Shown in pieces: positions 13,131 to 22,305 of a DNA stretch of 64,000 nt (positions are counted from its first letter, which is position 1; each line of letters begins with the position of its first letter). The position numbers were made by a program, and so were the translations under genes. Source of the stretch: Pelomyxa schiedti. Its lineage: Eukaryota > Protista > Evosea. A model generated the notes under the pieces. The model had not been told where the DNA came from and searched no databases. It saw only the letters and a program-made list of their open reading frames with translations. The DNA lies in NCBI GenBank assembly GCA_020536535.1, contig JAHLWZ010000222.1, positions 62,001 through 126,000 on the forward strand, given 5' to 3'.

Positions 13131-14789
13131 ATGTCCGAAACAGACGCACTGTTGAAACCCGGATCTGTCCAAGAAGAGTCGAGTGGTGGGGAGATCGCAC
13201 GAGGGAAGGGCGATGCCGGAAATGCGAGCGGTGAAAAGAGCGTTCTTGAGATCCAACACAGGACGTGGCAGGTCAACTTCATATTCATTCTGGTTGCTGG
13301 TCGTAGTTTTGCTCAAGGAATATCATCCATAACGCCGGTGTACTTTCGTGATTGGCTTGGGTGCAGTACATCGGTGTCTTCTGCAATAGCTGTGAGTTTT
13401 ACAACTTCACTTTACTTCCCTCTTGTTCGTCTTTTTTTTTTTTTTTAAAACAAGCCTCCTCCACTATCAAGACAGAATGTTAATCTTGCCGTATACTATG
13501 GCTCTGGATTAGTAGGGGGTGCACTGGCCGACACATTCGCAGGGCACTTCAGTGTCATATCCCTTGGTTGCTTGATAGCATTGATTTCTCTCACTATTCT
13601 TGTGGGGTTCAGTTGAGTTCCTCGTTTACTTCCACCTTGTCTTGGCACCTGCTTATTTACTCCAGGTATGTTTGTGGAATCAATAGGTATCACAGTGACT
13701 TCTTTGCTATTCTTCTATGCATCAGGAGTTATGGGACCATCTGTTTCTGCATTTATTGGAGATCAGTTTCTTGAATCACAAAGTGTAAAACGCACTTCCG
13801 CTTATAGCTGGTATTACTTGTGGTACTCAGTGGCGGGCATTCCATCCACAATTTTGCTACCAATAATTTTTGATATCACTGAGCCTTGGGTTGCATTTCT
13901 TCTGTGCTTGATCGCATTCCTTATAGTGATGCTCCCCTTCTTTCTGCCGGCGCCGTTGTACGATAAACGGCCCCCAAAACGAGGTACCTATGTCATTGTT
14001 TGCAAGATATTTTGGTCAGCTCTGAGAAAGTGTTTTATGTCAAAGGAATCCAGTCATTCCTCTTTTCTGGACCGTGCCAAAGAAGACAATGACCCCGAGC
14101 GAGTCGAAGATGTGAAAATGGCTCTTAGAGTGTTGAGCATTTTTTTGACTCTCCCATTGTTTTGGGGCATTTTTTTTCAGATTAACTCGCTGTGGATTTT
14201 TCAAGCTTCAGGTTACCATTACCTACTTCTTCTTTTTTGTTCTTATTACTTCGTTGTAGACATGGACTGCAATATCGGGGGCTGGGTTCTTCCTTATGCC
14301 GAAGTCGGGTGCTTGAACAGTATAAGCGATGTCATCCTAATCCCGATATTTGATCGTATCGTGTATCCTTTGTGCAAACGCTTGGGCATGAAAGTGACTC
14401 CTCTCCGTAAAATGGTTTCTGGTCTGTGTGCAACAGTTGCAGCCGTTCTCGTAGCTGGATTGGTGCAACTCGCAATAGAGCGAAACCCAGACGATTTGCT
14501 CCCAGTATCTCTCATCATACCCCAATACGTCATTGTCTCCATTGCGGAAGTTCTTCTAAGCGTTACGGCATATGATTTTGCGTACTCCGAAGCACCTTCA
14601 ACAATGCGCGGATTTTTGACTTCAATGTGGTTTCTCACAATCGCACTTGGCAATGGCGTCACTGCATGTCTTGCTTTAATCCCCTTTGCGAGTTCCACCA
14701 CCTCCTTTTTGCTTGCTGGCCTTACTGTGGTTATTACGGTTGCATTTTGTTTTTTTGCCGTAAAGTACAAATACAAAAATAAGCCTTGA
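13131..14789 (+). CDS. POT/PTR-family (SLC15-like) MFS transporter
   Basis: GGALADTFAG, SAFIGDQF, LPLFWGIFFQ.NSLWIFQA, TPLRKM, IPQYVIVSIAEVL and FAYSEAPSTMRG, with multiple TM helices. Confidence 0.88.
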
Positions 14790-14898: not shown

Positions 14899-17800
14899 TT
14901 ACAGTATTGAACACTTGGATCGTCCTGATTTGCGTTTGGACTCGGGTACTGTGGCGGCCACGAATTTACGCATCTCGCGGACAAGCTCAGTAAATACCTG
15001 GTCTCAAATTAGGGATCGAAAGGGTTTGTACGGGAGGGAATACCTCGTCGACGTTTATTCTGGCTTTGGCGGAGGTGGCAAAGAAGCGAACTCCAAAGCC
15101 ACTGGCCATGTCTTCGGCTTCTTGTTGTTTGACTTGGATAAGGTGCACCAGATCGCTCTTGTTTCCAACAAGAATGAGAGGAACCTTTGACTGGTCCTTC
15201 ACTTGAAGAATGTGCTCTCTCAGGGAGCCAACTTCCTGGAAGCTCGCTCTTGCAGTGAGTGCAAATACGAGGAGGAAGCCTTGGCCTGTTCGCATGTACT
15301 GATCTCGCATAGCAGAGTACTCTTCTTGTCCTGCTGTGTCCAGAATGTTTAGGACACAAGGAACATCATCAACAGTAACTTGTTTTCGGTAGCTGTCCTC
15401 GATCGTGGGATCGTACTCCTCTGCGGAGGTGTAAGTTTACTGGAAAGCCAAGAAAAGGGAGAACATACCAATGAAATGGTTCTGTACAAAGGATATAGTC
15501 AGAGCAGATTTCCCTACACCACCAGTGCCCACTACCACAATCTTGAACTCATCACTCATTGCTCCTGGTGTAGCTTTTCCACCAGGGCCCGGTCTTGGTG
15601 TTTGTGGGTTAGTTGCCCCACGGCCAGTACCTGTTGCTGGTTGTGCTTTTGACGGTTGGGGTGTTGGTGTTGGTGCTGGTGTTGGCTTTGGTTGTACAGG
15701 TTGAACCGGCTGTACTGGCTGCGTTGGCTGCACAGGTTGAGCGGGTTGTACTGGTTGCACGGGCTGAACAGGTTGAACAGGTTGTACAGGTTGAGTGGGT
15801 TGGACAGGCTGAGCAGTAGTTGCAACTGGAGAAGGAGTGGTTGGGGTCAGTACTGTAGCCTATAACACCGTTAAGGAAAAACAATTGTAACTGGAAAAGG
15901 GTACCTCGAGTGGGGACTGTTGAGTAGGGGATGATTGCTGGGTTGGTGCTGCTGTTACTGGAGGAGGCTGGGTTGGAGGAAGTGAGGGCTGGCTGGGTTG
16001 CGGAGGATATGCTGGAACTTGTGGGGGTAGTTGCATCGGGATTGAAGGAGGGGGCTGTTCGGCAGGCAGTGGGGTAGGAGCGGGAGGAAGAGTAGATGGA
16101 ACAGTGGTTGGGGCTGGTTGGGGAGTGGTAGGGGCAACAGGGGCAGGAGTAGGATCAAGTTGCGCAACTTCGGGCATTGGAGCAGGAGGAAGGAAAACGG
16201 GGGGTGGGGGAATATCGAGTAAGAACTAGTAAGAGGTAAGAATAAAGCGGCTGAAAACTACTACTTACGTTTTCGTCGAAAGGAGGGGGACCTGTTAAGG
16301 GAGTTGCCGGAGCTGTCTCTGGAACTGGGGCCGGAGCAGTAACTGGCACGGTTGTGTTTTGTGTTGGTTGTGAAGGGGCCATGGTGTCGAAAACCAGGTC
16401 ATCAAGACTGTCAGTTGCCTTCGATCCAAGAAGGATTTGTTCCAAAAGATCCGCAGTATTGTCTTCTTGAGTATTTTCGGGAGCATCATTGGGGGTAGGA
16501 GGTGCAGGTGGAAGAGATAAAACAGCAGTATCGGGCTCAACAGGGGGAGGGGTAGCAGGAGTGAGATCAATTGGTGTTGTAGGAGTTGGTGGTGCGACGG
16601 GAGTTGCAACTGGAGTGGGAGTTGGAGGAGCCACTGGAGGTGCAACGGCAGTGGGTGGGGCAACGGGTGGAGGTAAAGCAGTTGGCGGTGCTACTGGAGT
16701 TGGGGGAGCTACTGGTGGAGCTACTACTGTTGGTGTTGGAGTAGGAGGTGTTACTGGTGGGGCTGCAGGGGTTGGTGGAGCAACTGGAGGAGCAACTGGT
16801 GTTGGTGTTGGGGGAGCAACTGGAGGTGATACCACTGTCGGGGGAGCAACTGGAGGTGATACCACTGTCGGGGGAGCAACAGGCTGTGCCACGGGCGTAG
16901 CTGTTGGAGTTGGGGTAACCGGTACCGGGGTTGGCGACGGAGGGGAAACAGGTGCTGGTGTGGGCGTTGGTGTTGGTGTTGCCACTGGAGTTGGAGTGGG
17001 TGTTGGTGTTGGTGTTGGAGCAACCACCGGTGTTGGTGTGGGAGTAGGGGTCACCACAGCAGCAGGCGCCGGTGTGGGAGTAGGAGTAGGAGGGGACTGA
17101 GGCACAACGTGGTTTTGGGGCCCGGGTTGGATAGCAGTTCCCCGTCCTCCTTGAGGAAGCCCTCTACCTACTGGACCTCCTGGAACGCCTGGACCTCCTG
17201 GACCACCTCGACCACCAGGTCCAGGAGGAGGATTAAAAGGTATAACCTCCACAAAAGCAGCGGGAAGGAATCCAGATTGACCATTGCGGAGCTGTCCTTC
17301 TAGCCAATCATCAGGATACACGTTGATCAGCTGAATACGGTCGTTCTTGGAAAATTTGAGCACCGTAGGTTCTTCGTCTATGTGAAACATTAGGAGAAAG
17401 AGAAAAGCGTGGGATTAAAAACCTGTATAATCGAACGAGGCGACAGACTCCAACTTGAATTCCGGAGTGGGCACAACAGTTCCATCCGGCATCGTCTGAG
17501 GTGGAGGGGGCACATCGGGCATTGGTGGTTCTTGAACCTGAAGACTCATGAAATCTGCAAACTCAATAATGAAAGCTATAGCTCGCGTGCAGGGAGGTGG
17601 AATCTGCTCTGTAAGCTCAATCGTAGGCCGTAGAAGATACTTGGCAAAGATATCCGCCACAGTGTTTACTGGAAGACCGCTGGAGTGTAAATACGACGCC
17701 AGGCTGAGAACTATGTTACGGCACACCGGAGGCATCTTGTGCAATAAAACTCGCATCTGAAGTCCTCTCGTTCGGGGGTTTGGTATTCCCGCCACTCGCA

Positions 17801-18134
17801 GAACGGTGAAGTAAAATTTAGGCGGAATAACCGGATGCGGTAGCATTTTGAAGTATAGAACCAATACACCGGCAACAACTTGTACGTTTTCTTCGAGCGT
17901 AACTGGGTGGTCCCCTGTGGGGGTTGGATCCGCTGCGTACTGATCGAATTTGATCTTAAGCTGCTTGATGCTTTCGTGCTCAACGCTCATTTCGAAGAGA
18001 TCCGACTGTGCGGGAACCAGAGCGCATAAGATCTCCAGAGTTTTTTCTATCGGAACTGGGAGCGATGCACCGGGCGGCAAAGCGCGACCCAAAGGAAGTC
18101 CAAAAACTGACTCGTTCGGTGGTGGGGCCGACAT
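14899..18134 (-). CDS. Fusion protein: RhoGAP-like domain - SH3 - Pro/Thr-rich linker - Ras GTPase with CaaX (~1000 aa)
   Basis: Five GT-AG introns of ~43-48 nt join the frames with no stop. RhoGAP: [33 protein letters not shown]3: [35 protein letters not shown]. Ras: [54 protein letters not shown]. Confidence 0.88.
15690..15815 (-). repeat. 9-nt coding repeat encoding (QPV/QPT/QPA)n
   Basis: Degenerate tandem 9-nt units inside the linker of the RhoGAP-SH3-Ras gene. Confidence 0.85.
16580..17095 (-). repeat. Coding low-complexity (PT)n / PPVAPPT repeats, including a tandem 30-nt unit at ~16811-16880
   Basis: ggggagcaactggaggtgataccactgtcg is repeated in tandem and translates on the minus strand to [10 protein letters not shown] units. 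Confidence 0.85.
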
Positions 18135-19391: not shown

Positions 19392-22305
19392 TCACAGCCT
19401 GACATTGGAGAAAAGCACTTGGTCTTTCTTTCTCCTGCTGTTTCGTTTACTTTGTTGTTGGTGTTGTGTTGTTGGTGTGGGTGTTTTTTTCTTTTTGGAG
19501 GATATGGGTGTGGTGCTTGTATTTATTTTTTCAGCTGTTGTTGGTGTGTTTGTATTTGCTGCAGCGGAAGTTGCAGTTGAACCTGTACTTGTACTTGTAT
19601 TCGTAGTCGTGGATGTGGATGTGGATGTGGGTGTGAGTGTTGTTGTGGTTCCAGCTTTAATTGTGGATGCAGTTATAACTGTGGTCCCGATTTTGGGTGT
19701 GGATGTGGTTATTGGAGGGGACAATGCGGGAATTGCCTGGGGATTGGAGAGGGGTGTGGGTGCAAGTCGCGGTACAGCAGCGGTAGCATTGCTGAGGGCG
19801 GGCGATGCCGGAAGAATTGTGGGACTGAGGGGTGCTGCTGGTTGTTGTGGTGAGGGAGATGAAGTGGAAGGTGCGGGTGATGTGATGATTGTGGATGCGG
19901 ATGGTGAGGAAGTGGCTTTAGGTTTGGGTGCAGAGCGGAGTATATCCGCAAAAGTGGGATGCTCAGAAGGTGGTTTTTCTGCTGTGATACGGGGTGCTGG
20001 TGACTTTCGGCGGACCGGCTTCGGTTTCACTGTTTCAGCCTCGGGAGGTACAGTTGCGGACGCCTCTTGTTCCAGTGCAGCCTCCTCTTGTTGTGCTCGT
20101 CGTATCTCTGCTGCTCTAACTGCCTGGGCAAATGACATTTTCACTTCAGTGGGTTCTGCGGGAGGTGTGACAGTATCGTTTGCTGATGTAGTAGTTGTAG
20201 TAGAAGCAGCAGTACTCGTTGGGGGTGTGATTTTACCAGTGTCCCCTTTATCGTGATCTTGAGCACTGCCAACATCGTGAATTCTGCCAACTTCAGGAAA
20301 ATCTCGGGACGAGAAAATAGGACGATCATCCATAATGCCGGAAAATATGGCAGCTTTTGGGTAGGTGATACAGAGCGGGCGTTGTGCTCTAGCCATCACT
20401 TTTTCGTGTTCAGCTTGGCGATGCTGCCGACGTGACTGACGATGCGCAAGTTCCGAAGCAAATTTATGTATGGTGGGCGGCGAAACTAAACCGGAAAGAT
20501 CCAGCTCCGCAAACGCAAAACTACAAGTTAGAGGCAAATGTGATGTTACTGGGTAAAGACGACGACTTTCCTTGGGAGACAAATTAAGGAGAGAAACAAG
20601 GCTCGACAAACCTCATTTTGGATAATTTCCTCAATTTCAATGATTGGTGCAGTCAATTGCTGGCTTACATTGGATCCAAATTCAGTATAAAGCATCTTCA
20701 AGTTCAGTGGATGTAAAAATATCAGTTGTCCACTAGTTTCTTTTGTTGAGTTGTATATTCAGTTTTGTTTCTGCGTAGTTGTGGTTTTACCCTGATACAG
20801 GGGGATAGCATTAACAGGGAACTCTTTTGGTGTTTCAACTGCAGTGGTAGGTGCAATAGTCTGTTATTATTCATTCAATTCTTACGTCAAGTAAAATATG
20901 GAAAAAACTTCATCAGAGGAACTTGATATTTCATCCTACAAAAATCATCACTGGAAAACACCTTTAAGGATTACCTCATCACATTCTTCCAATCCAGGTA
21001 TCTAGAAATTTGTGAAGTTTACCTCATTTATAGTGAGTTATACTTGTGACGAGCACCGGGGTTTCCTCACTGGGGGTGTCCTGATATTATTAAGCGCTTT
21101 CATCAAGAATTCAAGTGATGGATCGCTTTCAGTTTCGGCCTCTTGTATGGCAACCAAAATTTGCCTTTCTTCCTCTTCGAGAATATTTCTGGGGAAAACA
21201 TGTTAGAAAGTTTGAAAATGTTTCTTTCAGTAAACAACTTTTTATGGGTACCAACAGTAAAGCGAGAATACTGCTGGAAGGGTTCCTCCATTCGGGGGAT
21301 ATGTTGTCCATGGGAAGAGTCCTCCCAATATTGTAGTGGGACGGGGATTGTTGATTGCTTTTGTGGTTCCAGTCAGTGTGCTTTTGTGACAAATAAAAAA
21401 TAACTTGGGAGCGGAACAGAAGTATAAAGGAGATCTTGTCTCCAGCAGAGTATTTTTGGACCACAGATACAATGGAACTTTTCATTTCCTTTTTAAAAGG
21501 AATTCAATTACTTTCACAAACAAAGGAATATTCACATTGAGCATGATTGTCTCTGTGCACAATGGGCACGTACCCGCTGCTGGTGTTGCACCATAGGAAA
21601 AATAACGTATGATACACGCAAGGCAAAAAATGTGACCACACAAGGAAGCACGTCTGAAAACAGTTAAAAAGAAAGATGCAAAGTAATATTGCAACGGTGC
21701 AACAACTGAATCCAAGCAAATGGGACTAATTCAGTTAATGGTATGCATAGAACAAGTAAGACTACCATTCATAATTAGTATGTGTAGTATGCACCACAGC
21801 TTCGACATCCTCCCAATCAACTGGAGTGTCTGGGTCTAAAGGAAACTAAACAATTAAATAAAAAGAAACTCGGAACCCCACTTGTAATCAAGTCAGAGTG
21901 ATCAGACTTGATTACAAAACGGTAGCTACAAATAATCAGTCATAAGACACAGAACAGGAAAGTATACTTGGCATGAATAAATTTGCCCTTGTTGTACGGT
22001 GTGCTATCATTCCTACGAGGAACTGTCATACGCCTGGTAACGTGATTTTAATAAACAAAGATGGTGCTCCAAGAAAAAACCTTCTCCCTGAGGACGGTTT
22101 TTGAATTTGTGGTAAACGAAAGTTGAGCAAATAGTTGCCAGTTTCCACCTACCATACAAACTGTGACAACTACCCAAAAAACAAAACAAAAAAAAAACAG
22201 GTTACAAACTGGCAATTTCTTTGTATGCCTATTCTTTGTCCTATGCGTTTGACCCCCATCACGCTCTCTCGTAACCGTGTCCCGCCGGTGCGCGTCCTCG
22301 CTCAT
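19392..22305 (-). CDS. RNF10: RNF10/Mag2-like RING E3 ligase
   Basis: NYLLNF, KFIHANYRFVI, PDTPVDWEDV, CPICL..CGHIFCLACIIRY..CPLC and FAFAELDL..FASELAHR, with a basic C-terminal tail. The 3' end is approximate. Confidence 0.85.

Follow-up and report, generated by a model that had tools for sequence, protein, structure and literature searches.

The 64,000-nt stretch of Pelomyxa schiedti DNA analysed here (assembly GCA_020536535.1, contig JAHLWZ010000222.1, positions 62,001 to 126,000 of the forward strand; hereafter the window) carries on its minus strand, at 14899-18134, a fusion gene whose predicted product joins a RhoGAP-like domain without arginine finger, an SH3 domain, a long disordered linker, and a complete Ras GTPase ending in a CaaX box. 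It was interpreted, with a probability of roughly 0.85, as one gene, belonging to a family of multidomain Ras proteins that is specific to its lineage. The original prediction, made from the letters of the window alone, had likewise proposed a single gene and a real fusion; this reading is now strongly supported, because the same domain order is kept at eight paralogous loci, open reading frames (ORFs) run from the SH3 domain into the Ras P-loop, the Ras domain of several paralogs has no initial methionine, and the fusion occurs whole in transcripts of another organism and in an intronless ORF. The features of the gene are as follows.

14899-18134, minus strand: whole coding region, six exons, 1002 codons plus stop
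18132-18134, minus strand: start codon, in exon 1
18134-17423, 17377-16269, 16225-15905, 15859-15469, 15420-15044, and 14997-14899, minus strand: exons 1 to 6, derived from a frame check
17378-17422, minus strand: intron 1 (45 nt), within the SH3 domain after FDYTG; the SH3 domain continues across the splice
16226-16268, minus strand: predicted intron 2 (43 nt, GTAAGT..TAG), in the linker, with the sole frame-keeping acceptor
15860-15904, minus strand: predicted intron 3 (45 nt), in the linker; the exon-4 frame begins right after the TAG acceptor
15421-15468, minus strand: intron 4 (48 nt), in Ras, at a position common to the paralogs and the closest relative (L025)
14998-15043, minus strand: intron 5 (46 nt), in Ras
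17490-18110, minus strand: RhoGAP-like domain without arginine finger, in exon 1 (Pfam RhoGAP, PF00620, 5.3e-14)
17238-17450, minus strand: SH3 domain, spanning intron 1 (Pfam SH3_9, 4.3e-8; SH3_1, 8e-6)
15560-17237, minus strand: disordered linker of about 530 residues in three exons, recognised by composition and tandem repeats
14899-15559, minus strand: Ras G domain, hypervariable tail, and stop, including introns 4 and 5 (Pfam Ras, 7.2e-39)
14902-14940, minus strand: polybasic SKRKSGRSK followed by the CaaX box CSIL, read from the sequence

The splice combinations tested for frame gave a coding sequence (CDS) of 3009 nt, comprising 1002 codons with a lone terminal stop and containing no internal stops or frameshifts. 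It is assembled through five introns of 45, 43, 45, 48, and 46 nt (in the order 1-5), each bounded by GT and AG; the original prediction had likewise stated that all junctions splice in frame. Just one of the seven candidate acceptors of intron 2 yields a stop-free CDS. Introns 1, 4, and 5 (one in SH3 and two in Ras) are confirmed, since conserved domains continue across them; the position of intron 1 is matched in the paralog L014, where it is read through in frame. Similarity searches were run with single exons or database proteins as queries, and the joined 1002-residue model was checked for frame only.

The first exon encodes a RhoGAP fold, which was modelled by AlphaFold2 with a predicted local distance difference test (pLDDT) value of 94.5. 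The top Foldseek match of exon 1 was the RhoGAP domain of p190A, with template modelling (TM) scores of 0.67 by query and 0.80 by target and a probability of 1.00; OCRL (2qv2 and 3qis) and the p85 BH domain (1pbw and 6d82) were also among the matches. The arginine finger (GxFRxSG) is absent: DLFEMS is aligned to GLYRVS of ARHGAP5/35, so that the arginine is replaced by glutamate. In an alignment of 56 domain sequences, this column holds E, D, A, T, or S in all members of the subfamily and R in the canonical RhoGAP matches. The NKM..N[LI]A motif, which bears the catalytic-site asparagine, is replaced by SGLPVNTVA here and by variable residues across the subfamily, with the register of one asparagine being uncertain. 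Both the arginine and NKM..N[LI]A are retained by the canonical RhoGAPs that rank last in the exon-1 match list. The dead GAP state is thus ancestral to the subfamily and has been maintained, because all members are devoid of both features and the canonical matches keep them. The domain had been called a 'pseudo-RhoGAP' from this gene alone, and the alignments extend that description to the entire subfamily. The hallmarks of the SH3 domain are intact across intron 1, including SFDYTG (ALYDY-like), DDWLEG with the conserved tryptophan, and LPAAFVEVI of the C-terminal strand. No FF domains were detected in the Pfam scan of the exons.

The Ras part is complete, in agreement with the original prediction, which had listed G1-G5, the effector loop, a polybasic tail, and the CaaX box CSIL; all of these motifs were read directly. 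The G1 P-loop GTGGVGKS lies at the end of exon 4, where Pfam Ras (PF00071) scores 1.6e-5, and exon 5, scoring 7.2e-39, holds the intact effector loop YDPTIEDSY (Thr35), switch II DTAGQEEY (Gln61), G4 NKSD, and G5 TSAKA. The closest solved structures are those of classical Ras, KRas, and HRas (E about 1e-44), and NCBIfam assigned the generic small_GTP domain only. A C-terminal box of the CaaL type is present in all fused relatives but P0013, which has CCII. A CaaX box ending in leucine is predicted, from the specificity of prenyltransferases, to direct geranylgeranylation rather than farnesylation.

To find paralogs, the P. schiedti genome was searched with exons 1 and 5 and then by tblastn. 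The RhoGAP-like domain, SH3, a spacer rich in S, T, and P, and Ras were found on one strand at eight further loci, located on contigs C792, C681, C823, C893, C794, C409, C1071, and C891 in identical domain order; the fusion family of P. schiedti thus includes at least nine genes. At two of these loci, a single ORF passes from SH3 through the spacer into the Ras P-loop (2093-3046 in L017; ending at 2564 in L018), with the other frames closed and the junction reading ...GWDEI[KH]VVVIGTGGVG. No methionine stands ahead of the G domain in five paralogs: L012 and L013 (both ECGESNHIVVVVG), L016 (GASSDEWKIVVVG), L017, and L018. Two fused P. schiedti models, P0001 and P0002, are public in NCBI as 'ras family small GTPase' and 'small G-protein Ras2'. 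A sequence-word search with the L014 ORF found just these two, word searches being swamped by low-complexity and Ras words. The P. schiedti annotation was produced with Augustus and refined by PASA and EVM with transcript data (PMC8887013).

Outside this genome, the exon-1 search returned just 77 proteins at E <= 0.001 among 1.84 billion representatives, and exon 1 therefore defines a narrow subfamily. Among these proteins, several are whole fusions in the RhoGAP-like-SH3-Ras order that end in a CaaX-type prenylation box; they come from related amoebae and environmental sequences. P0013 and its isoforms are Trinity transcripts of Mastigella eilhardi, P0013 encoding the whole fusion. Two isoforms of P0013 (P0079 and P0082; 401 and 416 aa) end inside the linker, without Ras, and could represent alternative splicing or intron retention giving a product with the RhoGAP-like and SH3 domains (the cassette) only. 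A whole fusion of 647 residues (P0108) is encoded by an environmental contig of 1979 nt, and P0014, P0026, P0089, and P0091 lie on JGI contigs of about 2 kb. In a 59.6-kb metagenome contig (L023; P0030/P0086), the whole fusion occupies one intronless ORF of 621 codons adjoining a eukaryotic CLU gene. One standalone Ras was found: P0088, of 185 aa, on a 620-nt ENA contig, which starts MNDVKVVVVGAG and falls into the same 90% cluster as the fused P0030. It may be a donor, or a recent copy shorn of the N-terminal part. Chimeric gene models of animals made up most of the output of a word search with P0013, and a feature search of the ESM Atlas with P0001 gave no usable match.

The closest relative of the gene is L025, on a 497-kb ENA contig, with identities of 52% in exon 1, 66% in SH3, and 74-93% in Ras. 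Its linker is of similar length, of the PAPAPA type, and divided among three exons. The splicing of L025 allows several in-frame solutions, which are compatible with the present model and not decisive. Its Ras domain has isoleucine at the position of the methionine of this gene, which means that a start at this ATG (15559) is not conserved. The maximum-likelihood trees of the RhoGAP-like and Ras ends contained three well-supported pairs, identical in both, which is expected if the domains were inherited together.

The linker is composed of 34% P, 16% T, 11% A, and 11% V, and no Pfam family was found in exon 3. The original prediction had it running without intron or stop into Ras. The first part of this claim did not stand, as two introns are predicted in the linker (16226-16268 and 15860-15904); the last linker exon, from 15859, does continue uninterrupted into MSDEFK. 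The open frame itself is no better than chance evidence of fusion, because all three minus-strand frames are open across this low-complexity region. The best sign of translation inside the gene itself comes from the repeats: 13 of the 14 tandem-repeat rows within 15500-17300 have a period divisible by three. Near-perfect arrays with 30-nt and 9/18/36-nt periods are located at 16806-16880 and 15693-15816 (minus strand), the 9/18/36-nt array standing directly upstream of the Ras ATG, and the linker is growing by in-frame repeat expansion. In the relatives, the linkers vary from about 115 to 530 residues and differ wholly in composition, being rich in Q, N, G, and S rather than proline and having few proline motifs. 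What these linkers retain is apparently their disorder and length rather than a sequence. A WH2-like element was considered in the linker and dropped, as no conserved island occurs there in the relatives.

The same N-terminal cassette was also found on other outputs, the remaining long proteins of the subfamily being fusions to modules other than Ras. A RhoGEF follows the Arg-less RhoGAP cassette in six proteins (P0020, P0024, P0025, P0027 from Rhizomastix libera, P0028, and P0034); SH3 can be recognised in five of these proteins and a PH domain in four. In two environmental proteins, P0023 and P0033, it is followed by WW and a protein kinase. P. schiedti itself encodes the cassette with WW and a kinase on C814 (L021, 67000-73000; 1112-4252, plus strand) and with a kinase on C1151 (L022, 3000-9500; 5146-2009, minus strand), and without any output domain on C927 and C77. 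The position of the cassette is always N-terminal. This distribution suggests that the dead RhoGAP and SH3 form a reusable module for input or targeting, apparently employed with three kinds of output. With RhoGEF-PH and WW-kinase also among its fusion partners, the cassette is better explained as a general Rho-linked input module than as a device specific to Ras.

Judged from these sequences, the Ras domain would work as a normal GTP/GDP switch, held at the membrane by a geranylgeranyl group and basic residues. The cassette would not stimulate GTP hydrolysis and would instead serve as a binding or input module. Its likeliest partners would be a GTP-bound Rho-family GTPase and a proline-motif ligand of the SH3 domain; the Rho-family partner is proposed because other Arg-less RhoGAP folds are analogous and the cassette is also paired with RhoGEF. 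Being flexible, the linker would allow the cassette to sample a large radius about the membrane-anchored Ras. The fusion would couple one common upstream cue to the Ras output, a Ras-specific self-regulator being less likely; the common cue appears the likeliest reading because the cassette is wired to three outputs (Ras, RhoGEF-PH, and WW-kinase). In its fullest form, the proposal is tentative, with odds well short of even: the cassette might be a lineage-specific sensor of an active Rho-family (or other) GTPase that Archamoebae placed before three outputs. In the Ras fusions, a classical Ras would thereby be turned into an integral effector of Rho signalling, or into a coincidence detector for it, and its membrane reach would depend on the rapidly evolving linker.

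It is also conceivable, albeit unlikely, that the cassette of the single gene acts in cis, the dead GAP docking on the switches of its own Ras or the SH3 domain binding its own linker, thereby autoinhibiting or locking Ras. Contacts in cis are favoured by tethering, RhoGAP and RasGAP are generally known to have structurally related cores, and the linker of this paralog has 62 PxxP matches. Among these matches, however, a single SH3 motif is class-I-like and none is of class II, and a conserved lock between SH3 and its own linker is unlikely because the linkers of the relatives are not proline-rich. The presence of the cassette on RhoGEF-PH and on WW-kinase, and alone, further argues against a Ras-specific partner. 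A complex prediction for the cassette of P0001 (residues 1-290) with its own Ras (residues 556-732) gave a score of 0.01, which speaks neither for nor against such docking.

Much less probable is a pair of adjacent genes, one encoding a RhoGAP-SH3-proline-rich protein and the other a standalone Ras of 190 residues starting at MSDEFK with its own promoter, the open frame between them being a low-complexity by-product. Such an arrangement would agree with the three open minus-strand frames of the linker, with an ATG kept at the canonical Ras start in this paralog, with the short Mastigella isoforms ending in the linker, and with the standalone Ras P0088 of one environmental organism, whose identity to a fused Ras is at least 90%. 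The decision against it comes from the conservation of the arrangement at eight more loci (in two cases with the junction inside a single ORF), from the five paralogs and the closest relative L025 without methionine, and from the whole fusion in transcripts and in an intronless ORF elsewhere; the repeats just upstream of the ATG also keep the frame. A decaying gene, an assembly chimera, or a gene-model artefact has a negligible chance of being correct, for although the genome derives from whole-genome-amplified single cells (5337 contigs) and chimeric 'X+Ras' models are frequent in animal annotations, the 3009 nt are free of stops and frameshifts, all catalytic Ras motifs are intact, and nine loci, and other organisms besides, show the same domain order.

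Several observations nevertheless weigh against the interpretation as one fused gene with the proposed role. The gene model at this locus is a prediction from genomic DNA, and introns 2 and 3 lie in low-complexity DNA, their basis being only frame logic and the unusual length class that they have in common with the other introns. The 1002-residue product was not found among the protein-collection representatives matching exon 1, the best match being 69% identical; the public annotation may lack or split the gene at 14899-18134, though paralogs are annotated as fusions. In this paralog, an ATG is situated exactly at the start position of a standalone Ras (MSDEFK, 15559), and an extra isoform from this internal start is conceivable. 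The closest exon-1 paralog (L019 on C927; P0003, 329 aa, Pelo_14283; about 68% identity) is a cassette without Ras: no Ras was found within 4-5 kb downstream of its RhoGAP-like and SH3 domains, and in the C927 copy Ras has been lost or was never attached. Finally, the binding partners assigned to the cassette are all inferred.

Two neighbouring features were noted in the window. A POT/PTR2 transporter gene (13668-14789, plus strand; Pfam 1.8e-55) is convergent with the fusion gene; a distance of 110 nt separates the end of its ORF from the Ras stop, so that very little space is left for two 3' untranslated regions. Upstream of the fusion gene and on the same strand, an ORF of 405 codons (19392-20609, minus strand) encodes a product rich in S, T, and P without a Pfam family.

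Among known systems, p190RhoGAP (ARHGAP35/ARHGAP5) also combines a GTPase and a RhoGAP fold in one chain, and exon 1 finds its best match, in sequence as in structure, in the RhoGAP domain of p190RhoGAP. As the original prediction had pointed out, the order is reversed, the GTPase of p190 being N-terminal and not prenylated. In p190, the GAP is active and has an arginine finger, FF and pseudoGTPase domains are present, and there is no CaaX box, whereas the fusion has a C-terminal classical Ras that is prenylatable. The fusion is not an orthologue of p190RhoGAP, since the similarity is limited to E of about 3e-6 and about 20% identity. The p85 BH domain and OCRL/INPP5B are likewise Arg-less RhoGAP folds without catalysis that serve as binding modules, and p85 also has SH3 and proline motifs; unlike the fusion, with its RhoGAP-like domain followed by SH3, they carry SH2 or phosphatase modules and no GTPase, and only the fold is shared. 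Large Rab GTPases (CRACR2A/Rab46, Rab44, and Rab45/RASEF) consist of N-terminal modules, a long region, and a C-terminal prenylated GTPase. They belong to the Rab family and have EF-hand and coiled-coil N-termini, in contrast to a classical Ras with a dead RhoGAP and SH3, which makes the likeness an analogy, not homology. IQGAP has a RasGAP-like fold without arginine finger that binds Rac/Cdc42, and is thus a dead GAP fold used as a GTPase-binding scaffold; it is a mirror image of the present case (a RasGAP fold binding Rho-family proteins) and has no fused GTPase. In Dictyostelium, RGBARG-type regulators (PMC7416115) combine Ras- and Rho-pathway modules in one amoebozoan chain, but there GEF and GAP regulators are joined, whereas the fusion chain holds the Ras switch itself and its GAP is dead.

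The architecture was not described in the full-text literature searched or in the relevant genome papers, including PMC8887013. The fusion proteins are present in public databases under generic Ras names only and are unstudied. Classical Ras is almost always a small standalone switch, and the crosstalk between Ras and Rho normally proceeds via separate regulators. In the present family, which has grown to nine genes or more in a single genome, a dead Rho regulator and an adaptor domain are permanent parts of the Ras chain. The functional account given above is a plausible hypothesis. The family offers, among anaerobic amoebae, relatives of Entamoeba that are poorly known as a group, a natural experiment in the rewiring of signalling modules and in the role that a GAP fold may take after its catalysis has been lost.

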